This document shows, one piece after another, positions 1 through 12,272 of a stretch of 12,272 nt of DNA; the stretch's first letter is position 1; the number at the start of each line of letters is the position of its first letter. The DNA lies in the NCBI GenBank assembly GCA_030704615.1, contig JAKLZA010000199.1:1-12272 (forward strand), read 5' to 3'. Below the pieces are notes generated by a model. That model had not been told where the DNA came from. It saw nothing but the letters and a program-made list of their open reading frames with translations, and made no database searches. Made by a program: the position numbers and the translations under genes. Source of the DNA: Takakia lepidozioides (taxonomy: Eukaryota > Plantae > Bryophyta).

Positions 1-1365
1 CCTCACTCTCATTCTAGACAAACATAAAGGATTTGTTTGAAACAGCTGAAGGAAAGCTTGCAGGGCACAGAGCATGAAGGTATGGTTGGCACAGAATGCA
101 ATGGGTAAGTGCTTGTAAGCTTGTGGGGCTTGCAAGTATCGATTTAGAGAAAATGTACTCTCCATTCGTCTGTCCTTGTGCCACTGCGTAAGTAGTAAGG
201 CGAGCGTGTAGTCTGTTATTTCCGCCATAGCTTCAAAGCTATAGCTTTGATTGTCTCCCCTGTCGAGACGCCCGTTACTCGGAACTACGCCGACTCTTTT
301 GCTCATAATTTTTTTAAATTCTTGATCTTGCTTCTTGGAAAATACCCTCTGCAGGAAATTCTGGCTCATGATTGGCTGTTGGCTCTGTGATTGGTTTTGT
401 AATTTAATTCTCTTCTGTGGATTTTTCCCCCAGGACTGTTTACTAGGATAGCACATGTGACAAGGATTTCGCTTTTGGGTACTTGTAAAGGGTTCCGTTA
501 CCCTTTCCATGTATGCATTAATGGGCCCACAATAAATTTCGGTTAACGTGCCGGGTAGGTACTTTGACGGCCAATTTTGTCTTCCTTCTTGATGACACCC
601 GTTCTTGCAATTCATGTCCGGCTGTGTGTCTCGCCCTGGCGTCCACGTGTCCATTTCTAAACCTGCCTCCGTCCACTTTTCCGCCGGCCACTCTCCGGAT
701 GTTAACCCACGTCCACATGTCACTGATCCTATGGACTGTGTAAACCCGGTGGGCTGTGTTGAGCTGTGATAGGCTGTGTGGCACTGTGATGGGTTGTGAT
801 AGGTTGTGCAACGCTGTGATGGGCTGTGATAGGCTGTGTCACGCTGTGATGGGCTGTGATAGGTATGCGAACACCTGTAGTTCCCGCCCTGGTCATATAT
901 GCTCGGCTTAGCGACAAGTGCTCCATACTCCGTTGATATCACTGGCGCAGCCCGTGACTGCTTTTGCGTTTCAACATGCAAATCGTGCTGCAATGGTTTG
1001 TCATAGATACCACTGTACCCCTTTAACTTATTGGCATTGACTCTTCCCAGCATCTCTTTGTTAATGGTTTGTAACATGGCTGTGTTGTTATCATACATCT
1101 TTTGTATGACATAAGGTCCCTTCCATGGTGATTTAAGCTTAGAAGCTTTAATCTTCCCTTTCTTCTGCAACCAGAGAACCAAATCTCCCGTCTTAAAAGT
1201 CTTTAATTTGCCTTCATCAAACTGTTCCTTCATCTTCATCTGAATTCTGGTCATGTTATCAGCTGCATCATCATGTACTTCTTCCACAAGGTATAATTCA
1301 TGTTTCCTGACCTTAATTGAATCTTCCAATTCCATTCTCTTTCCCCATTCTGTTCTCATGGTAGG
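1..1365 (-). CDS. Uninterrupted continuation of the pol frame: integrase C-terminus plus an unknown extension of over 330 aa running off the window
   Basis: I read all 455 codons in this frame from 1365 to 1 and found no stop. It is probably absent from the ORF track because no stop lies inside the window. Confidence 0.75.
751..863. repeat. Tandem repeat, 10-bp unit (nGGCTGTGAT-like), about 11 copies, arranged as a 30-bp higher-order unit
   Basis: gggctgtgtt gagctgtgat aggctgtgtg gcactgtgat gggttgtgat aggttgtgca acgctgtgat gggctgtgat aggctgtgtc acgctgtgat gggctgtgat agg. Confidence 0.95.
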
Positions 1366-2150
1366 TCACAAGAATTCCACTGGAAGTAAAGCTTCCATAC
1401 CATAAACTAATTGGAATGGTGTATACTTAGTGGTGACTTTATATGAAGTCCTGTATGACCACAAAGCTGTCAGCAGCTTTGTATCCCAATCCGTTCTGTT
1501 TGCATTGACTATCTTAGCCAAGATAGTACATAGTATTTTGTTGGTAGCCTCTGCCTGCCCATTACCCTGTGGGTAATACGTTGTACTTTTTCTATGCACA
1601 ATCATGAACTCTTTAGTCAATAGTTCAATGGTCTCATTAATGAAGTGACTTCCCTGGTCACTGATAAATTCCAAGGGACAGCCAAATCGGGTAAGTATGT
1701 TCTCATACAGGAACCTTGTTGTGGACTTGGCTGTGTTGTCCCTCAGAGCTTTAGCTTCCACCTACTTCGTAGTATAATCAGTGGCCGTAATTATATACTT
1801 GTTCTGTGTATTCTTGGCCGGTAGGTTAATTGGTCCAACAAAGTCTAGTCCCCATTTCTGAAATGGTTCAGTAGGCATCATAGGATGCAAAGCCATCTTC
1901 CTAGATCTCTGCAAAGGTCCTAGCCTCTGACATTCATCACAACTCTGACAATACTTGTGTACATCTTTGAACAAAGTAGGCCACCAGTAACCTGCAAGTA
2001 GTATCTTCCTACTGGTAGTCTCTTCTCCAAAATGACCTCCAGCCACTCCTTTATGAACTTCCTCCAAAACTTTATTTACTTCATGGTGGTACAAGCATCG
2101 TTTAAGTACTCCATCAGGTCCTAGCTTATACATTCTGCCCCCTATCATAG
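1015..2150 (-). pseudogene. Integrase (HHCC zinc finger, DDE core, GPY/F motif) with two premature stops
   Basis: HKGVAGGHFG...WWPTL...CQSCDECQ zinc finger; catalytic WGLDFVGP / ISDQGSHF / GQAEATNK. Reading through the TGA at 1366 gives FKTGDLVL...KLKSPWKGPYVI (1111-1125)...VNANKLKGY. Confidence 0.95.
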
Positions 2151-2289
2151 TATAAGGTAAAGCCTTGATAGCGATTCTCTTCCTCTGCTCCTTACCATAA
2201 CTAGGTGGGCACTGACCATGACTAAGGTACTATCTGATTGGCCACTGCCAATCTAACCATTCATCTGCACTTCCTTGCACCTCCATTGC

Positions 2290-2787
2290 AAATAAACTCG
2301 CATCAGGTAATTGGTCGTCTACTCCTGTGGCGGGCTCTCCTGTTGTTAGGCGTGACAAATGATCTGCCACAAGATGCAAACGGCCAGGCTTGTAAACAAC
2401 TTCGAACTCAAACTCGTGCAAGATTATTAACCACCTTGCTATCCTTCCACTTATCAAAGGTTTGTTCACCAGATATATCAGAGCCTGGTGATCCACATAA
2501 AACATAAACTTTCTTCCCAATAGGTAATGCCTGAATTTCTTGACTACATAAATCATTGCCAGTGTTTCTCTTTTAGTTGTGCTATAGTTCCTTTCAGCAC
2601 TGTTCATCAACCTGCTAGCATAGTACACCGGTGAATCTATATTTTTTGTAACATTTTGGGCTAACACCGCTCCCAACGCTTCTCCTGAGGCATCACAATG
2701 AACATGAAATACTACATGCCAGTGAGGGTTAATCAGCACGGGTGTAGTTGTTACTGACAATGTAAGTTCCTCAAAAGCTGTTGACAT
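2290..2787 (-). pseudogene. Ty3/Gypsy RNase H domain
   Basis: Motifs FHVHCDASGEALGAVLAQ, YYASRLMNSAERNYSTT, KKFRHYLLG, VDHQAL, RIARW, YKPG and VADHLSR in ORF 2230..2787. Confidence 0.95.
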
Positions 2788-2984
2788 TCAGCTGTCGTTG
2801 CAAACACTGCATCTTTCTTCAGAAGCTTGCTCAATGGTGCTGCTATCTGTGCATACCTTTTGACAAATCTACTGTAATAATTGGTTTGTCCAAGGAATCT
2901 CCTTAGACTCTTAACATTTACTGGTGGTGGAGAGGCTTTAATGGCCTCTGTCTTCCTGGGATCCACAAGTAGTCCCCTCTTACA
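2788..2984 (-). pseudogene. Reverse transcriptase C-terminal (thumb/connection) fragment
   Basis: Reads CKRGLLVDPRKTEAIKASPPPVNVKSLRRFLGQTNYYSRFVKRYAQIAAPLSKLLKKD, the typical Gypsy segment downstream of YxDD. Similarity stops abruptly at about 2985. Confidence 0.92.
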
Positions 2985-3149
2985 GCAAAGATTCCCCAGA
3001 GTGCAGCTCCAGTTGGGGATGCTCCAGCTGCTCAGCCCCTACTGCCACCAGCAGAAATGTCTCCGGAGGAATTCCAAAGTGCAGCGGATACAATGTTGGA
3101 GGAGACACACAGTAGCATTGGTAGAGTTCTGGGTAGTAGGGTATTCCAG

Positions 3150-3587
3150 CGGACTCTTCGAATCCCACTCTGTCGCATGGTCTCCCTTCCCATCGTCAGG
3201 CAGGCACTCCCCGGAGATGTGGATAAGCTCAAGTTCGCATTTCGAGAAGGGTACCGTCTAGGTTCGCCAGCCTTCTACGTTTCCCTTGAGAATGAGGACG
3301 GCGAATCTCGTGGACCCACTGCGGATGAATTGTCAACATGGGATACCCACTGGCACACTCGCAACGACAAATTTGAGGCAACGCTGAAGGGTGATCCAGA
3401 CTTCGGCCATATGTCGGGTAAAATGTTCTTTGTGTGGGACGGGAATCACCGACTTCTTGCCTGGTGGAGTACATCAAGCAGAACCATGCCAAGCACATTG
3501 GCTGGCATTACATGGTGGAGTGTGTCATCCTCAGGTGAAGGCGGCAGACTCCTCCCTGCTCAAGAATGCCATGGCGGACCTCAACTC
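3150..3587 (+). other. ParB/Sulfiredoxin-like nucleotide-binding domain (exon 1)
   Basis: IPLCRMVSLPIVRQALPGDVDKLKFAFREGY...PAFYV...MFFVWDGNHRLLAW. This has the ParB-N pattern: strand, conserved R, helix, G, P-hydrophobic strand, then DGxHR (3438-3452) and a helix. Confidence 0.7.
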
Positions 3588-3619
3588 GTAAGATACTCAT
3601 ACCCTCCCAAGCACGTTCG

Positions 3620-3637
3620 AAATGCGGTGCCGCATTT
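3620..3637. repeat. Palindrome copy 1 (intron 1)
   Basis: AAATGCGG-TG-CCGCATTT. Confidence 0.95.
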
Positions 3638-4827
3638 TGGTTTCCAATCTGTTTTGTTTCCATGCTTCCGTGGACTGAACTGGAGAGTGTGCCTTGCAGG
3701 GTCACTGAAAATGCGTACGTGCATACCCACATGGCACATATGCTGTACAGGGTGAGGAAAACTGGTCTCACTGATCCGCACATGTTTGCGGAAATGCTGG
3801 AGCCCGAGCTCATTCAGAAAGCCGTGGCAAAAACTGACCGGACATGGTATCGTCTCACTATGGATGGAATGGTGAAGGTGATATACAAAGTAAGTCGTCC
3901 TCCCATTTCCCTCTGCTCATCCTTCCCCAATTTTCAGTAATCTTTCCACATGAGTCGAATGTAACACTTCTGCATGTTTTTGTTGGCAGTCAAACATCAA
4001 GCTGGATTTGGCCCATGCCAAACGCTTCTTCATGGAAAGTGAGGGGCAGGTCAAAACGTTGCAGTCATTGACTGAGCACTTGAAGGAAGCCGGGGTCAAG
4101 TCCAGAACAAAATACAAGTCAAAGCTTGTGAAGCTGGTGGCCATTGCAGATCCGGCACTTGGAAAGGACTTCATCCCCGAGATTGCAAAACACTATTCTC
4201 GGGCCATGCAGCCGACCATGCAGTTGGAGAAACTGCATCACCTCTCAACGGCATGTGTTGAGACGAAAGAGAAGGTGAGGTTTCAATGCACTGAAGTTCC
4301 TTCCTAGCAATAGCCACTCTTCTTCCTGCTCCTGACATTGGATCAGAAATGGCAGACACGGCGGCTGTCGATCTGGAATGCATCGGAGAGTATAAGGACA
4401 ATGTGGTCTTTTCCACTCGAAGTTTCCGACCTTGTAGTGGATGTGTGGCTCAACCGCATGACTTGGAGGTTCCAGGTAATTCAAGGTACTTCCCCAGATT
4501 TGCTTTTCTGAAATGAATTCCCTGAACTGCTACGTGACAATGCATGTGGGAATCGCAGGTAATGACGAATGCGAAGGAGCAAGTCGTAATGCATACAAAT
4601 TCGTTTGGCTTGTACGTCAAATGGGATGGAACACAGACATTGGAAGACTACGTGACACGTTTCAGATGTGCGTACAAGGACACCTCTTCGCCAGGGAGCT
4701 GCAGACAGCAAGAAGGAGCATGGAGTTTACACATCAGGAGGGAGCGGGAAAAGCTGCAATGCGAATTGTTTACAGGTGAAGCCCAGCTGTCATTGTATGC
4801 AAAGCCTGGTTATGAGGTTTATCTGGG

Positions 4828-4844
4828 AAATGCGGCACCGCATT
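4828..4844. repeat. Palindrome copy 2 (intron 5)
   Basis: AAATGCGG-CA-CCGCATT. Confidence 0.95.
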
Positions 4845-5749
4845 CGCATTTTATGTTTTCGGTTGCACTCTGCGAGTACGTTGGTCTCAACTTTTGCTCA
4901 CGCATGCTGACTGCCCTGCAGGTATATGAAATACGTGCTTCTTCAGACAGGGGCCCTGGCTCAAGAGCCCCCGTTCTTTATGGCTTGGACCGTGGCGGGC
5001 TCAAGCTGTGTCTACACACCCGAGATGCAGAAACAATGGCATGTCGCGCATCTCGTTGGATGCCCATGGTACCTGGACCTGTCTGGCGGAATTGTTACGA
5101 GTCTAAGAAAGATCTGCACACGAAAGCAGAAGAGAGAAGAAAGGAAAGACGTGTCCCTGCTCGGCCAGAGTCGGCAAAGGAAGCTGCTTCTCTGGAACAA
5201 TCCAGAAAGGCAGCTGAGATGGCACAGAAGACTGTGGATGCAGCTGTGCAGGCTCAACAAAAGGGTCGAAGAAGCGACTCGCCAGCAAGGAGCAGTTGTT
5301 GTGACACCCAAGAAAACAGCAGAAACAGATAGTGCAGGAAGAGGGTGAGGAAGAGGACTCCAATGGAGACTTTGCAACCAGCCCACCCCCCGAAACGCAG
5401 CCGAAATCCCTTGGTGCCCACCGTTGTCACGAGAGGGACGAGAACTGGCTCGGCAAAGAAGGCACTCTTCAATCCCCCGGGGGGCACCCTTTCGAGCCGG
5501 TGGAAATGAAGAGGCCGAAAGTGGATCCCAATACAGTAGTCCAGTGTGTAAATGAGAGTTTCTTGGCGGCTTTGGATGGACGGGCAGCCAAGTTGGCATA
5601 CATGAAGACCATGGAGGGTCTGAAGGGCAGAGCACTGAAAAAGGCGGCTGCCGAAGAGCCTTCCGACACCCCTGGGTTTCTGAAGATGGTCTCGTTCTTT
5701 GAGAGGGTGTGTGCAGACAAGGATTGTAGGAGGGGCGGAAATGCCACCG

Positions 5750-6580
5750 AGTGGTCTTGCGATATGATCATCTTGGATATTCCGGACGGAGAGCCTGTGG
5801 AAGGACTGCAAGCTTTGCCATCTTGGAACAGGTACTCCGAGGACTTTTGGAAGAAAGGATTCGGGCTCGCCCGCATGGTGTTGGACGACAGAGGCTGTGT
5901 GGTTGTCCTGGCGAGCAGAGGCAAAAACACGCAGACAGGAATTGCGAAGTGGACCCGCAAGAGCGCCGTCCCAATTCTGAAGAAGAAATGGACGTGCATC
6001 AACACATTGGGCCTTCGGTCGGAAGGGAAGAAGGTAATTACGACATTGGCACTCGTCCTTTCATTTTCTTAGGAGTTTTTAAATGCGGTGCCGCATTCGA
6101 TTTCTAATCGTTCCCCACTGTGTATGCAGACGAAGCAGTTCGATGCATACTACTTTGTGAAGGAGAACTCCACCTTTGCTTTCCGGAAGGAGGGATTGTT
6201 GGTTGACCCTGAATTGCGACCCCATCGATTACGACGTCCTGTTCAACAACGTTCCCACGGAACTTCTCCCTCATAGCCTCACTTCAATTGAACCCCTGCG
6301 GTATTCACGGACTCGGAGCCCTGTCTTCATTCAGACAATTATGGAGACATGCACTGACGTGGAGGGCACAGTGCTCGACTCATCTGTGGGACAGGTATGC
6401 AGAATCTTGTTGTATGTTGTTCTCCAAATTCTTGTTATGCTTTAATTCGCAACATCTGAAGGGCCATGTCATAATGTGTGGATGGCATTGTAACAGGTGC
6501 CTCAATGTGGGCTGGGCGGTTTTCCGACCGGCACCTCTTTGCCTACGAGGAGGACACATCCGTCTGGGGATCCCATCTGG
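5750..6580 (+). other. Beta-class amino-methyltransferase-like domain (N6_N4_Mtase-type), exons 6-8
   Basis: Motifs are in beta order: CDMIILDIPDG (cf. VDLIITDPPYG, motif IV, 5776-5787); FGLARMVLDDRGCVVV (cf. CYRVLKPDGSIYI); FDAYYFVK; and RSPVFIQTIMETCTDVEGTVLDSSVG[T]|GASMWAGRFSDRHLFAYEED (cf. KPVALLERLI..SSNPGDLVLDPFAGSGTT..AA...GRRFIGIELD, motifs X-I-II). Confidence 0.78.
6081..6097. repeat. Palindrome copy 3 (intron 6)
   Basis: AAATGCGG-TG-CCGCATT. Confidence 0.95.
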
Positions 6581-7399
6581 AAGGGCTGCAACGGAATGTG
6601 AAGGCTCCCATCGAAGCCAAAGACTCCTCGGATTCGTCGGAGTCGGAGGAAGAGACAGTGGACATTGATGCCGAGGAGAACCCGGAATACGAGTGAGTGC
6701 AAACATTGTAAGTTTGCAAAGCCTTCTGGGTGATTTTTTGTCAAATGCATTTCCGGACTGTGGTTCTCATTGGTCTCGTTGGTGATTGTTATGTGCAGGA
6801 TTCTAGGATCCGGGTCGAAACATGTAGGGCCTACACTTCTTGCCAGGAAGAATGTCCCGTTCTTTGCGAGGGGCGACTTCATGACGAGCCCGGTGAAGGA
6901 CTACTCCCTTCCTAGTTATGCAGCTAAACTCGCAAATACAGCGATTAGACGATGTGAGAATCCTAGTAAAGTAGAGCAGATTTTGGAGAGGGCTAGGGAG
7001 GACAGAAGGATAAGGAAAGAGTTGGCAACAGCTGAGACAAGTAGACGGGTGCGAAAGTTCATATGTGATTCAGCGGATGAGAGCGATGCAGACAGGGAGG
7101 ACGACGAGCCAACGGAGGTGAGATGGTCGGTTCCGCAAGGTGAAGATGGGATTTTCGAAAGCCTGGCCAACGAGCAGTCCGCTGGAGATGAGAAAGACAA
7201 TGACGGGGTGGAGGCGAGTAGGACAGTCAAGGATAGGACGACGATAGTGATGATTTCAAGATTAATAGAATTTTAATGAACTCTCTGTACATTTAAGTTC
7301 CTTCCAGAGTATATAAAGGAAATTCTCCCCGTCCTTCATGTCCCCTCTCCCATGTGCTTCTCACGACAACATCGTCCAAACCTGGTCCCTCCCAAAATC

Positions 7400-7694
7400 G
7401 GAAATGCGGCACCGCATTTCCAAACCGAGGCAAGAACAATTTTCCGTTTCATGGTTTGGACATTAGAAACTGTTCGGCGAACGGAAATGCGGTGCCGCAT
7501 TTCCGTTTTCGACACGACAGTTTTGCCGATTGCCAGCTCCTTCCATGGAGGTAAATGTAAATGCAGAGGTCAAACATGGAAATGCGGTGCCGCATTTACA
7601 TTTTGGAGATGGACATTTTTCCAACTGCAGACCCATCGACGGAAATGCGGCTCCCCATTTCATGATGCTAGACGGGAATGCGGCACCGCATTCC
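7400..7694. repeat. Cluster of five palindrome copies downstream of the ParB-MTase gene
   Basis: 7400-7421 GGAAATGCGG-CA-CCGCATTTCC; 7480-7507 AACGGAAATGCGG-TG-CCGCATTTCCGTT; 7580-7597 AAATGCGG-TG-CCGCATTT; 7642-7661 GAAATGCGG-CT-CCCCATTTC (degenerate); 7675-7694 GGAATGCGG-CA-CCGCATTCC. Confidence 0.95.
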
Positions 7695-7712
7695 ATTGTC
7701 CAATAAGAAATT

Positions 7713-8561
7713 TGTTAACCGCTGGTTTATGACTTAGACAAAACAGGCTATTAACACTACTGCCCATTTCCTAAGACATGCAACAGAGGTTGTCCGATGG
7801 TATGCTTTCAAAAACGATTACGAAGTAATCGTTTTAAGGATAGCTAAACCATGAACGTCGGATGAAGCCATATCCTTGCAGACTGCTTAATCCTATTGAT
7901 TAAGACCAATCTACAGTCTCTTAAGCATAAAAGATCTTAGTTGGAAGGACTGAAGCCTCTTGGTTCCTACAAGCAGATGGTAGTCAAGAGAAACAAGAAC
8001 TATTCTGAGATGATACACATTCTCACCATCTCACGTTCACTCTACACAGAGATACTTCGAATAGCATGGCTTTACTCCAGAGCTCGTCACATCATCACAG
8101 AAGTACACAAAATCACTCTGAGTCCCTCTAACTACACATTGATCACTGATACTCCTACTGCGCACCTTCTGAGTTGCGTGCAGTCTTTTTATACTATGCT
8201 CGAAAGAGCCGTTACAGCCTGCGGTCGTTAATGACTGTTTGCCTAACTGCCTACGCAACCTAAAAGGTTTGCTAAAAAGTGGCTCGTTGTAGTGGTCGTG
8301 AGCCATAGTGGTAAATGATCCACTACTCCCTCTATTGGTTAAAGCCGATGTTGTCGTGACCGTGTGATATTGTGGTTCACGGCTCACGGTTACTACACTA
8401 CCCCTTACTGCTCTCGTGGTAATGTACCCTTGCCCCGCCATTGGCTAAGTACCGCGTACTTAGCCGTGTCTGCCTGTGGCTCAGGTAGTGTACGTCCATC
8501 ACTACCCAGTATGTCCCGTTGCGACCCTCGTTGTCTGTCCCTCGTAGCATAGCCGTTATCA
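7713..8561 (-). repeat. 3' long terminal repeat (849 bp)
   Basis: On the minus strand it starts TGATAAC immediately after the PPT and ends GTTAACA, a 6/7 terminal inverted repeat. It contains a TATA box. The candidate 5-bp target site is AAATT (7708-7712). The partner LTR is not in the window. Confidence 0.8.
8186..8193 (-). promoter_or_regulatory. Putative LTR TATA box
   Basis: TATAAAAA on the minus strand, about 370 bp into the LTR and in the element's sense orientation. Confidence 0.5.
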
Positions 8562-8585
8562 TTTATCCCCCCCCCCCCCCTCTTT
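8562..8585 (-). promoter_or_regulatory. Polypurine tract (plus-strand primer)
   Basis: Minus strand reads AAAGA-G14-ATAAA, directly followed by the TG of the LTR. Confidence 0.85.
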
Positions 8586-8607
8586 GAAATGTGTCCGCAC
8601 AATTTCG

Positions 8608-11600
8608 TCAATTCATGTACTTGCTGTATCTCTTGGGGATGTAAGGTGGTGGCATGCCTGTCTGCGAGGTAGGAAGTGCATCCCAGGATTGTCGTGGTGG
8701 CAGCTTATTGTTCTTGTTATCGTCACTGTCTGGTTGTTCCTCTAGTTCGTGAGTAGGCCAGCTTTCTTCATCAGGGTGTTCTGCTATCCGTCCCCACGTA
8801 CCATATCAATTTTTGTTGGTCAAGATTTTGCGGTAGGTTTGCTGCTCCTCCTTGGTCCAGGGTATAATGTGTTTTGTTGCCTTGCTGCCCATTAACCAGT
8901 TAACAGCTTGGACCCCTGTTTCTCTGAAAGGGTGGTCTCTGTCCAATACCAATGGTGAAAAGTGGACCTTTGCCTGGCGCCATGCTTCAGCATAAAGTGG
9001 CCTAATATATATGCTGAAGTGATGTGTGACTCTCTCTGGTGGGTAAATTCCCAGTGAGTATCTTTTTCAATACTCTCATAGCGCTGCCAGCTTCCCCTCA
9101 TTGTCACGAACATGCGGTACAAGTAACTGCCAATATAAAAACTTGGGCATCCCATCACAATGGTTACTGCCGAGGTAGGATTAATCTTCAATTGCCCCAC
9201 TGCCCACATGTAAGCTACCAACTCCTTGTATTCCAGAGGAGCTTGGCGCCAAAATCCAATTCTCCCCTGACCATGTCTCTTCCTTAGCCAGTGGTCTCAT
9301 CCTATATCTCAGAGAATAAGAGTTTGATTGAGAAGATGCAATTGACCCAATGATTTGCAGGGAGTTAAGGTTTTGAAAACCTTCTCCAGTATTTATGGGA
9401 TTTGGTGGGGGCTGGTACTACCATCATTTTAAAGTATTCCTCTGAATACTTTAATCACTCCCCATCCTGCTTGCATGGCATGATTTGGAAATCATCCACT
9501 GCTACTGAAGTTGATGCTACAAGGACACGTGGTAGTGTTACAGGGTTTACCTCTTGAGTAGAGGCCTGCTGTGGCATGTACCAGTGTGTTGGTTTGGTGG
9601 TGGTTGTGTTGTGTGGTTGTTGTTTGTGTTGGTGTTGTGTTGTGATTGTATTGGTGTCTCTCGTTCGTGATCTTGCTCCTCTTGATCCTCTTTGTCCATG
9701 AGTTCATCTTGTTCTGGAATTGGTGGCAGGAAACTCCTCATGAATGTGTGTCACCAATTTCGTCAACTGGCAATTTATCTGCCTCACCTTGCCCTGTTGA
9801 GTTCTTAATTCCAATTCCCCCACCCACTCCCTTCATTCAACCAAGCTCTGGCTAAGGCTACGTCTGTTGCATCCAACCTGCGTGCAGTGTCAGCTTCTCC
9901 AGCTGCTGCTCTCCATTCTTGTTCATGCCAATGGCAATGTCTCTTTTCTGTGGTGGCGGTAAACAGCCTGCTCTCAGCATTCTCCCTTTGCTCAGCAGAT
10001 GCAGTGTGCTGTTGAGCCATTTGGTTCCATGATCTTGGCAGTCCTCAGCTGCCCCTTGAGTGTCTCCACCTGCTGCTTTAATGTTTGCACCTGCCTGGTG
10101 AGTGTTTCCACCTCTGTCTCTGTTTCCAAGATCTAGCTTGCTCTGCATCGAGGTCAGCTTGGACATGGCGTCTGTTTGTCTCTCTATCCTTCCCACTTTT
10201 GCTCCCACTCATCTCTGCGTTGTGCCAATGTGTTGTATTGGCGGAGTAAGGTCGAATTTTGATCTTCTATGCTGCAATTGTAACCTCATGGTTACATACT
10301 GTTCTTGTAGTGGCCAATTCCTCTGGTGCTTCTCTTTGATGTGGTCTAAGATCAGGTTCAGGTTTTACGGGCTGATGTAATCTTGGCCTGTCCATACAAA
10401 CTGTCAGTTGCCCCCAATGCTGTATTGCCTGCAGAATGACATTTGTGGTGTTCCTCCAACCCTGTTGGTCCATGCTCTTGTATCTAAAACTTGTTGTGCT
10501 AGTGTATTCCAAATTGGAATTTCTTCTTGCTACTGCTGATCGGTGCCTGTTTGTACTATCTGCGTTTGCTGACTGGTAGGGTGCTGTTGCACCATCTGCT
10601 GTTGCTGCGCCACTATGTCTCCTCCTCTGATTGTGTGGCCTCTGTGCGGCTGCTTGCTGTGCTTCGGTTGTGCCATGGCTACTTTCCATGGGCGTTTTTT
10701 GCTTTGTTGGTGGTGTTTGTTCCCTCCTTCTGGCTGTTGATTCTCCCCTTCTCTCTGTACTGGGGAATTAGCCGTCGAGTTGATGATGTCCCTCTTGCTG
10801 CACTTGTGGTTGCTTCGTTGATCTCCGGGCTCTCTTTGCAAGTCCGCACTATTCTTCCTGACATGTTGCCGTCTCAATTCCTTCTTCCTCCCTTGTGTCT
10901 ACCCGTTGTATGATTCCCAACGTCGCTGCTTCGGCCGTTAGGTGTACAGTTTGTCGAATCATCTGGAGTTAACAAGGGAGTCGCCATGTAACTAAAGTCG
11001 TTTCCTTCTTTTTTTTTTTAACTGGTCAGTTCTTGAGTTAACTTCTTCAATAAGAAGCTTGCCCAATTCACGATTTGCCAATTGAAAGCAAATCAACACT
11101 TGGTCGATTAGCTCTTGGTACAGTAGCTATGGTTTTGCCTGAGGCAAAGCAGCAATGTGCTAAGTACTGGGGCTATCTTCCTGAAGCATGGTTTTGCTAT
11201 GGCGCATGTGTAGCCTTGATCTGCTTGGTTGAGATTCTCAAACAAATCTGCAAGTACAAAACCTTGGAGGTTTTCCGGGTGCGGTGGTACGTCCAAACTG
11301 GGAAGGTGAAAATACTTCCGCCAAGTACCTCTCTGTCAGCAGGTGTGCGTGTCGTGGACATTGTGCTCCGAGTGCTGGTGTTGTAATTCTCCAAGAACTC
11401 CCGCATAGCTCGTTGTGCTTCAGGTTCAGTCCAGCGTGGTGATGAAGTATCGCAGGCCAAGACTGTCCAAACATCTCTTGTGTCTTTGTGTCCTGCTCAA
11501 TCTTCCGCAATGTTGGGCTGATTTTGAAATTGACTGCGCATAATAGAACTTGGGTGCCTTCCGCTTGTGCCTTCCATTTCTCTTAGTCTCGCGGTGTGCT
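8608..11600 (-). pseudogene. Degenerate accessory ORF(s) of the retrotransposon 3' region: plant-transposon-protein-like N-terminal domain, low-complexity/coiled-coil middle, unknown C-terminal domain
   Basis: Stitched across frameshifts it reads LDSLGLRYFITT / RWTEPEAQRAMREFLENYNTSTRST / HLLTERYLAEVF / GFVLADLFENLNQADQGYTC...IAPVLSTLLLC / IVNWASFLLKKLTQEL / TPLLT. This resembles the 'REFY.N...INWA...P.LT' pattern of Athila-type extra ORFs. Q/E/K-rich helical segments lie at 9850-10900 and a globular segment at 8770-9400. The last stop is TGA at 8608-8610. The start coordinate is approximate. Confidence 0.6.
9585..9655. repeat. GT/TTG-rich low-complexity tract
   Basis: gtgtgttggtttggtggtggttgtgttgtgtggttgttgtttgtgttggtgttgtgttgtg; encodes a Q/H/N/T-rich linker on the minus strand. 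Confidence 0.8.
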
Positions 11601-12272
11601 GTAAGGAATTGGAGCAATCTGTATCACAAGAAGTATGAAGCACACTGGAAGTTGTGTATACAACAATCCAGTTTCGGAAGAGAAGGTGAGGAGTTTGCTC
11701 CTGGGTTTAAGTAGGGATTCCTCTCTGTAGGTTTCTCCTCTAACTTCTCTCGAGGTTCTCGTGGAGGGATATCTGTCCTGCTGTTTGCCTAGGTTTAACG
11801 TGTGTTAGCTTTAATTGTTGGGCCCAGGCTTACCAAGAAGCATTAGCCTCAGGTAAGGTTTTGAGAAAACTTCATACCTTTGTGCTTGTTTTCTTCCGTT
11901 GGTTTGTGTTCTTCGTGATTTGTTTGTTTAAAACCGATGGTCATGTGATGGTCCAGTTTCGGTCAGTTTATGTTCATCCTCTGAGCTTGTTATCCACTTT
12001 GGTATGTGGTCCGTTTAGAGGGGCGGCATTGGAGCAGTACTTGCAGCTTGGTTTAATGGCTTGCCCTATCGCCGCAGTTTTTTGGGCAACCGTGGATTGC
12101 GCCGTCGTTCCGCCTCTGTGTTATGATCGAAGGGTAGTGGTGTATGATTACCACTGTCGGTGGTGATCTGGAGCGTACATCTCGGAATTTAACACAAGCA
12201 GTGACTCGTTGCCGTTTCGTATTCGTCACTGTTCTGTAGGGCATCTGTGCTGGCCACGGTCTCACCATATGT

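Follow-up and report, generated by a model that had tools for sequence, protein, structure and literature searches.

Introduction

Few eukaryotes have amino-methyltransferases of the bacterial type, which are candidate writers of N6-methyladenine (6mA) or N4-methylcytosine (4mC). Here we describe a gene that joins a ParB/sulfiredoxin (Srx)-like domain to a methyltransferase-like domain, found in a stretch of 12,272 nucleotides (nt) from Takakia lepidozioides (contig JAKLZA010000199.1, positions 1–12,272), which is referred to as the window. The closest described system is the 21.5 kb Sola1 element of Ectocarpus (Sola1-1_Ec32), in which a gene for a protein of 1104 amino acids (aa) with ParB-like and 4mC/6mA-type methyltransferase parts lies opposite the transposase (PMC12477816). 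In the Plavaka transposons of the red alga Bostrychia, which carry the accessory genes PAG2 and PAG3, inverted-repeat arrays adjoin the ParB-domain genes, and the authors proposed that the accessory protein binds and modifies its own element (bioRxiv 10.1101/2025.02.11.637652). ParB-linked adenine methylases of chlorophytes and chytrids, and ParB-Tls loci of phages, were described by Iyer et al. (PMC4738411).

The gene described here resembles the Ectocarpus gene in its size of about 1100 aa (about 1133 codons here), in its ParB-like N-terminus and N4C/N6A-type methyltransferase C-terminus, and in its place on the strand opposite a transposase-like gene within a DNA transposon larger than 10 kb, as seen in the related loci L001, L007, L008, L014 and L016. 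However, the carrier here has 55-nt terminal inverted repeats (TIRs), 8-bp target-site duplications (TSDs) and an open reading frame (ORF) that is MULE/SWIM-like by eye, and it is not Sola1. The likeness of the two systems is one of description. Unlike the Ectocarpus case, the named hosts here include land plants, namely the moss Ceratodon and the gymnosperm Taxus. The Plavaka genes share with the present gene a ParB-homologous N-terminal domain in an accessory protein and adjoining tandem inverted-repeat arrays, whereas PAG3 carries a 2-oxoglutarate-dependent oxygenase and no methyltransferase, and the N6A methylase is separate (PAG2) and fused to SET.

As for single-domain comparisons, the bacterial enzymes CcrM, M.RsrI, M.MboIIA and M.PvuII (PF01555) share the fold and the permuted motif order IV...X-I-II, and they are the best profile and Foldseek matches. 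In contrast to these enzymes, the present family has D-[VI]-P-[ED] instead of (D/S)PP(Y/F), 'WRG.REK' instead of 'HP.QKP', a linker of about 500 residues, spliceosomal introns and Pfam scores below threshold. Phage ParB-methylase fusions are a further comparison: the structural matches of the ParB-like model in the BFVD database include phage proteins named as methylases, which may be such fusions. The bdelloid rotifer N4CMT and MpDN4MT1 of Marchantia also have a beta-class fold in a eukaryote, and N4CMT (8s9m) was matched at E 4e-10. However, no ParB domain is reported for them (the preprint text on MpDN4MT1 does not mention ParB), and they are host genes making 4mC, whereas the present family is transposon cargo with a non-canonical loop.

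We consider it likely that positions 3057–7276 of the window are the dead copy of an intron-containing eukaryotic gene with about 1130 codons, encoding a ParB/Srx-like domain, a linker of about 500 residues and a beta-class domain, that in intact relatives this gene is cargo of a transposon of about 13 kb, and that in the window the element was severed by a Ty3/gypsy fragment. In the original prediction, made from the letters of the window, the locus was a hidden, intron-containing gene fusing a ParB-like domain to a bacterial-type N6A/N4C DNA methyltransferase. The observation itself held. The interpretation held in part: one gene, the two folds and the cargo role in relatives were recovered, and a working gene and an N6A/N4C function were not. 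The fusion is also less exotic than was supposed, as ParB-like and DNA-methyltransferase accessory genes of algal transposons are already published (PMC12477816). The kind of gene is thus already known and barely studied.

Exon structure of the gene

The plus strand at 3057–7276 presents itself as a series of ORF pieces in all three frames. The junctions were read by eye in the sequence and then checked by a script, resulting in nine plus-strand exons with a spliced length of 3403 nt, or about 1133 codons. The exons and the evidence for each are as follows.

3057–3587, plus strand: exon 1, ParB/Srx-like domain with DGNHR at 3438–3452 (26 homologues, alignment, tblastn of relative P0009 at 8e-34)
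3700–3889, plus strand: exon 2, helical region behind the ParB-like core (alignment, tblastn)
3990–4274, plus strand: exon 3, conserved 'LVAIADPALG' block (tblastn of the Ceratodon protein P0221)
4347–4475, plus strand: exon 4, 'KW..R.L..WN' block (tblastn of relatives)
4559–4775, plus strand: exon 5, with a frameshift at about 4672–4681 (frame reading, splicing script)
4922–6033, plus strand: exon 6, 'CPWYLDL' block, K/E-rich linker and first half of the methyltransferase-like domain (family hidden Markov model, HMM, E 2.9e-21)
6130–6394, plus strand: exon 7, middle of the methyltransferase-like domain, motif X and first half of motif I (family HMM, E 1.6e-7)
6497–6692, plus strand: exon 8, remainder of motif I together with motif II ('GASMWAGR...LFAYEED'), and an acidic tail behind them (tblastn of relatives)
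6799–7276, plus strand: exon 9, C-terminal tail with a conserved 'SLPSYA' block and the stop codon at 7274–7276 (tblastn of relatives)

Similarity to relatives reaches 5' of the start of exon 1, from 3027 on, and exon 1 itself matches relatives at E about 1e-34 (tblastn). In exon 6, the motif IV position D-I-P-D (5776–5787) is followed by 'LPSWN' and 'VLDDRG' ('ARMVLDDRG'). The X-I block occupies 6293–6394, and motifs I–II go on at 6497–6555. The predicted placement of DGNHR near the N-terminus and of the ordered motifs IV...X-I-II near the C-terminus is therefore located at 3438–3452 and 5776–6555. The window pieces are matched in the right order by a family profile that did not include the window, at the two E-values given for exons 6 and 7.

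The eight introns (112, 100, 72, 83, 146, 96, 102 and 106 nt) all begin with GT and end with AG, and their G+C content is 0.38–0.50 against 0.52 for the exons. Each intron links the two frames that carry homology on its two sides, and the tblastn alignments of relatives span the junctions after in-silico splicing. For intron 1 (3588–3699), confirmation comes from the relatives P0007 and P0009, which lack it and are continuous across the junction. An out-of-phase reading of introns 5 and 7 was rejected, because nearby exonic frameshifts explain the mismatch. The predicted chain of eight GT-AG introns joining one protein of about 1150 aa was thus reproduced, with all junctions in phase.

Intron 7 is in phase 1 and lies within the Gly codon after the Thr of motif I, in the loop that binds S-adenosylmethionine (SAM) (ACA G/GT...AG/GT GCC, where the slashes mark the splice sites). 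The distant relative L001 and Ceratodon purpureus have an intron at exactly this position and in this phase, and most ORFs of the family stop directly after '...TG' of the SAM loop. The claim that this intron splits the SAM-binding loop is borne out.

Decay of the window copy

A protein of about 1133 codons can be read from the window only if at least six frame breaks are read through. The homologous frame shifts inside the exons at about 3465 and 3535 (1 nt each, in exon 1), at about 4675, at one or two places in 5100–5340, and at about 6205 and 6382, the last of which is a 1-nt deletion in the SAM loop. The sole in-frame stop within a homologous frame is located at 3536–3538, at a frameshift site. 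Residues that are invariant or nearly invariant in the family are changed in the window (PWRG to PLRY, REK to RTR, LPVPG to EPVEG).

The 5' neighbour of the gene is a truncated Ty3/gypsy fragment.

1366–2966, minus strand: Ty3/gypsy pol fragment, 5'-truncated (Pfam RNase H PF17917 at 1e-32; integrase zinc finger PF17921 at 7e-16; integrase core PF00665 at 2e-5)

The fragment consists of two neighbouring ORFs separated solely by one in-frame stop at about 1762, and only about 60–90 nt lie between it and the gene (homology from 3027, exon 1 from 3057). It lacks the reverse-transcriptase and gag part, and the ParB-like gene begins where this part would be expected, which implies a deletion or recombination junction near 2970–3030. 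In relatives, exon 1 is separated from an upstream, divergent gene by intergenic DNA of about 2.4 kb; the gypsy fragment occupies the place of this upstream region and its transposase gene. Judged from its sequence, the window copy is a frameshifted, truncated pseudogene. We take the decay to be real because of the substitutions at invariant residues and the gypsy truncation, and the hidden gene of the original prediction does not stand as a working one.

The C-terminal methyltransferase-like domain

Folds were predicted with AlphaFold on the intact relatives P0009 (N-terminal domain) and P0065 (methyltransferase-like domain), and not on the window sequence. Word-indexed and exhaustive searches for the methyltransferase family gave 23 matches and 276 representatives, mostly exon-sized fragments. 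Those with a name are three proteins of Ceratodon purpureus and a 'Methyltransferase' of Taxus chinensis. A homologue search with the ORF 5332–6069 gave no match, and its length filter probably excluded the long-exon relatives.

The family profile, built without the window, was compared with the sequences of the Protein Data Bank (PDB), and CcrM was matched at E 7.7e-4 over profile positions 55–259, that is, over the whole domain, followed by other beta-class enzymes. The model of P0065 has a mean predicted local distance difference test score (pLDDT) of 81.8 and a predicted template modelling score (pTM) of 0.81. Its Foldseek matches are CcrM (1e-13), M.BceJIV, M1.HpyAVI, M.MboIIA, M.RsrI, TTHA0409, the rotifer N4CMT and M.PvuII (1e-8). 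An hhalign comparison with a Gordonia phage DNA methyltransferase, which is a stand-alone methylase with no ParB fusion, gave 94.5% probability and E 7.5e-8 over motifs X-I-II. According to the profile and the P0065 model, the domain has the Rossmann-like fold and the permuted order of the beta class, in which IV–VIII and the target-recognition region precede X-I-II-III. The SAM loop and the acidic residue of motif II are conserved in the family ('VVDL.A.TG/A...GR...ALE.D', with the slash at intron 7). These comparisons, made through relatives, support a predicted beta-class (CcrM/RsrI-type) amino-methyltransferase fold in the C-terminal half, and the bacterial-type fold claimed at the outset is upheld.

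Sequence searches at the level of single proteins were less telling. In L001, where most of the methyltransferase part lies in one 518-aa ORF, PF01555 (N6_N4_Mtase) was matched at E 5e-5. The scores in relatives (23.8 bits for this ORF, then 26.3, 20.8 and 15.7 bits) are all below the Pfam gathering threshold of 26.7 bits. The search with PF01555, which had been named beforehand together with the structures of M.RsrI, M.MboIIA and M.PvuII, thus gave no match at threshold, and the three structures were all matched by Foldseek. No match was found by phmmer against the PDB with the window pieces and the L001 pieces. When pieces of the window and of the family were compared with phages by tblastn, only noise resulted, except for weak matches (E 0.1) to DNA methyltransferases of Gordonia phages, one of which is the protein used for hhalign.

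The motif IV tetrad departs from the beta-class form (D/N/S)-P-P-(Y/F/W/H) throughout the family. At the position of ADPPY in CcrM the family has aD[VI]P[ED], with D-I-P-D in the window. The aromatic position is E or D in 111 of the 125 members that cover the site, and DPPY/F/W occurs in none of the 125. The altered loop and its surroundings are strongly conserved ('D.PE.LPVPG...VP.WN'), and Ka/Ks (the ratio of nonsynonymous to synonymous substitution rates) between element lineages is 0.09–0.18, which indicates that the domain is under purifying selection. The motif order that had been noted is therefore confirmed, and the tetrad within it is not the canonical one. The family-wide replacement of DPPY makes canonical N6A/N4C chemistry doubtful; it would be unsafe to assign the family as functional N6A/N4C methyltransferases, and the chemistry is probably not textbook N6A/N4C methylation.

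The N-terminal ParB/Srx-like domain

For exon 1, 26 homologues were found in metagenome and Logan assemblies (E 2e-29 to 6e-18, identity 38–52%), none of which has a Pfam domain. The closest exon-1 relative, P0001, lies on a contig that breaks off at exon 1. The alignment of this family shows invariant 'IPLCR', 'GY', 'YV' and 'V(W)DGNHR..AW'. D-G-N-H-R is present in all 27 aligned sequences, the window included, and the Ceratodon copy has E-G-N-H-R. The sequence agrees with the nucleotide-phosphate loop of the ParB/Srx superfamily, D/G-G-x-H/R-R.

The model of P0009 has a pLDDT of 77.6. Nearly all of its first 40 PDB matches are Noc, ParB, KorB, PadC, sulfiredoxin, SerK and SbnI; the best of these has E 7.7e-3 and probability 0.99, and Arabidopsis Srx is matched with a TM-score of 0.63. 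Against BFVD, most of the named top matches are again ParB/Srx proteins (ParB, Noc, KorB, sulfiredoxin and ParB-like nucleases across PDB and BFVD); two others come from phages and bear the names 'DNA methylase' and 'Putative modification methylase'. No ParB protein was matched among the PDB sequences by a profile of the N-terminal family, and Pfam ParBc (PF02195) was matched neither by the nine window ORF pieces nor by the 27 N-terminal members. The predicted ParB-like domain is thus recovered in the fold matches, which are almost only ParB/Srx, and not in any significant profile match with ParBc, DGQHR or the PHROG ParB family. With moderate confidence, the N-terminal domain appears to be ParB/Srx-like at the level of the fold.

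Related loci and the 13 kb transposon

Five related loci have the ParB-like and the methyltransferase-like part in collinear order: L001, its paralogues L007 and L008, a Logan contig (P0025 and P0036), and the Ceratodon locus L016, where the collinearity covers the full length of the window gene. This argues for a single gene, as predicted, and against separate transcripts. L001, L007 and L008 lie on three different contigs of 300–400 kb from one assembly. Their similarity (92–98% between L001 and L007, 73–92% between L001 and L008) is bounded exactly by a 55-nt inverted repeat, with the two ends 13.0 kb apart, and two copies are flanked by perfect 8-bp TSDs, ATGATGCA and GGAATTGT. The positions are as follows.

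L001 3467–16505, L007 3420–16243, L008 about 3494–16489: multicopy element of 13.0 kb with the ParB-methyltransferase gene, 55-nt TIRs and 8-bp TSDs
L016 (Ceratodon purpureus, CM026442.1) 9–2675, minus strand: homologue of the transposase-like ORF
L016 8646–9188 and 9310–9547: intact ParB-like exons, upstream of the annotated gene, which starts at 10001

On the opposite strand, head to head with the ParB-methyltransferase gene, the element has a transposase-like ORF of 1189–1229 aa. No Pfam or PDB sequence match was found for the 1189-aa ORF; by eye, it shows a MULE-like block and a C-terminal CxC...CxH motif and is MULE/SWIM-like. The same divergent gene pair is found in L014, from another sample (82% identity of the transposase-like ORF), and in Ceratodon purpureus (43% identity over 909 aa). 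It is well supported by these boundaries and gene pairs that the gene of this family is predicted accessory cargo of a cut-and-paste DNA transposon. The prediction that the gene travels on a large mobile element thus holds for the relatives with TIRs and TSDs, and the window keeps neither of these.

The annotated Ceratodon proteins KAG0605740.1 and KAG0624017.1 begin only at what corresponds to exon 3, with intact ParB-like exons directly upstream. Both gene models are probably truncated N-terminally and lack the ParB-like exons. Close bacterial relatives of the gene did not turn up, and an ancient prokaryotic acquisition, as in the original prediction, is conjectural here.

Short runs of the plant-type telomere repeat TTTAGGG were observed in L001, a metagenome contig, at 18047–18071 and 19168–19206, which hint that the source organism of L001 is a plant or an alga.

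Palindromes in and beside the gene

An 18-nt palindrome, AAATGCGG-YR-CCGCATTT, occurs eight times in the window and in none of 200 shuffles. The copies are located as follows (strand not applicable).

3620–3637: palindrome in intron 1
4828–4845: palindrome in intron 5
6081–6098: palindrome in intron 6
7385–7699: cluster of five palindromes (starts 7402, 7485, 7580, 7643 and 7676), about 110–420 nt past the stop codon

The remaining 7.9 kb of the window hold no copy. The cluster at 7385–7699 is a candidate binding array of the ParB-like module. In the clade of L001 a different palindrome, with the core CTCGGATCCGAG, is found in tandem arrays within an intron and as single copies, and it is kept in L006, L007, L008 and L014. 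The arrays of L001 are as follows.

L001 11410–12528: tandem array in an intron of the gene, 117-nt period, each unit with a GTCTCGGATCCGAGAC-type palindrome
L001 12641–13116: tandem array in an intron of the gene, 74-nt period, each unit with a GTCTCGGATCCGAGAC-type palindrome

The presence of a gene together with palindromes of its own lineage suggests that the two may form cognate pairs, ParB-like and parS-like. In L003, a divergent copy, a degraded relic of the 74-nt unit was observed at 6549–6705.

Alternative explanations

Several results weigh against the reading of the window as a dead copy of a ParB-methyltransferase gene carried by a transposon. The lesions found are all small indels and every splice site is intact, so that some of the frameshifts may be assembly errors. 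The ParB fold matches are weak (best E 2.5e-3). The profile evidence for ParB is faint, with phrog_1033 'ParB-like partition protein' matched by four of the 27 members at E 0.083 at best (the only PHROGs family matched by more than one member) and NCBIfam DGQHR matched by one of the 27 at E 0.16. Pfam searches with the nine single window ORF pieces gave neither ParBc nor N6_N4_Mtase even at E up to 1, and nothing else relevant. The window shows no TIR, TSD or transposase, and tblastx against L001 and Ceratodon detected no remnant of the latter. In Ceratodon there are no perfect repeated palindromes, and tandem arrays with an imperfect palindromic core are located upstream of the gene. One alternative is that the window holds a live host gene, possibly a domesticated one, with indel errors in the assembly. 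The eight introns, which keep GT-AG and the correct phase, the small size of the lesions, and the coincidence of the lone in-frame stop with a frameshift all fit it. However, family-invariant residues are substituted (PWRG to PLRY, REK to RTR and LPVPG to EPVEG), the upstream region is exchanged for a truncated gypsy pol that itself has an in-frame stop, and at least six indels per 3.4 kb would be a high error rate. We regard a live gene in the window as very unlikely and retain the pseudogene. The palindromes could likewise be small hairpin repeats, or insertions like miniature inverted-repeat transposable elements (MITEs), with no relation to the encoded protein. Three of the eight sites lie within introns in the manner of insertions, the window palindrome, sought by exact matching in metagenome contigs, gave four single matches that are probably due to chance, and the state of Ceratodon also favours this view. 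On the other hand, all eight sites are in or just past the gene, the clade of L001 has a palindrome of its own, arranged in tandem within the same element and kept across samples, and the ParB-domain accessory genes of red algae show the same association (bioRxiv 10.1101/2025.02.11.637652). Unrelated repeats thus remain a considerable possibility, on the lesser side of even, beside the candidate binding sites.

As for the chemistry, the intact enzyme could be an ordinary DNA N6-adenine or N4-cytosine methyltransferase, as was assumed in the original prediction and in the algal papers, and 4mC or 6mA is predicted for the Ectocarpus analogue (PMC12477816). The beta-class fold, the motif order, the retained SAM loop and motif II acidic residue, and the strong purifying selection are consistent with such an enzyme. 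Against it, 111 of 125 members have D-[VI]-P-[ED] as the tetrad holding the flipped base, and no member has DPPY/F/W. To our knowledge, the aromatic residue and the first proline of the tetrad are required in all characterised amino-methyltransferases, and motif loss of the METTL14 type accompanies inactivity. Ordinary N6A/N4C activity therefore seems to us somewhat unlikely. The opposite extreme is a non-catalytic domain that senses SAM or binds DNA, in a protein whose main role would be that of a ParB-like DNA clamp or partition factor for the element. The non-canonical catalytic motif and the presence of a ParB-like module with palindrome arrays point in this direction, whereas the high conservation of the altered loop itself and the low Ka/Ks suggest a re-tooled active site rather than a relic. 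This explanation is clearly unlikely, a step less probable than the ordinary enzyme.

Proposed mechanism

We tentatively propose the following, which as a whole is possible rather than probable. The ParB-like module and the helices behind it may recognise the short-palindrome arrays of the element itself, as ParB does parS. This would bring the SAM-binding, methyltransferase-like domain onto the DNA or chromatin of the transposon, and the element would thereby mark itself in a SAM-dependent manner, with the chemistry left unspecified. A more specific form of this idea is that land-plant and algal transposons have a self-marking system, in which a ParB-like loader sits on element-specific palindrome arrays and brings a re-tooled beta-class domain, with the loop D-x-P-E in place of DPPY, to the DNA of the element. 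This domain would write a mark other than 6mA or 4mC, or act on a target other than a base, and would thereby control silencing or transposition. We put this forward as a speculation that is unlikely to be right in all its parts.

Other features of the window

The 12.3 kb window as a whole is repeat-rich and eukaryotic-looking. A tandem repeat with the 10-nt unit GGCTGTGATA lies at 752–874, with about 11 copies and a higher-order period of 30 nt. The stretch 9500–11000 shows a strong excess of T over A (AT skew -0.38 to -0.50) and contains microsatellite-like, GT-rich repeats (9585–9657), and the ORFs in this stretch have no Pfam match. Rfam and tRNA scans of the whole window gave no hit.

Significance

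The window itself contributes only a dead copy, together with the evidence that ParB-like exons are missing from KAG0605740.1 and KAG0624017.1. The family to which it belongs represents a beta-class fold that has spread through plants and algae as transposon cargo, along with a ParB-like module and candidate binding arrays. What appears to be new with respect to the algal literature is the occurrence in land plants (in a moss, and as an annotated gymnosperm relative of the methyltransferase domain), the non-canonical loop that is family-wide and under purifying selection, the conservation of an intron within the SAM loop, and palindromes that are specific to lineages. The combination of the fold, the ParB-like module and the arrays makes the idea that transposons target and mark themselves directly testable.

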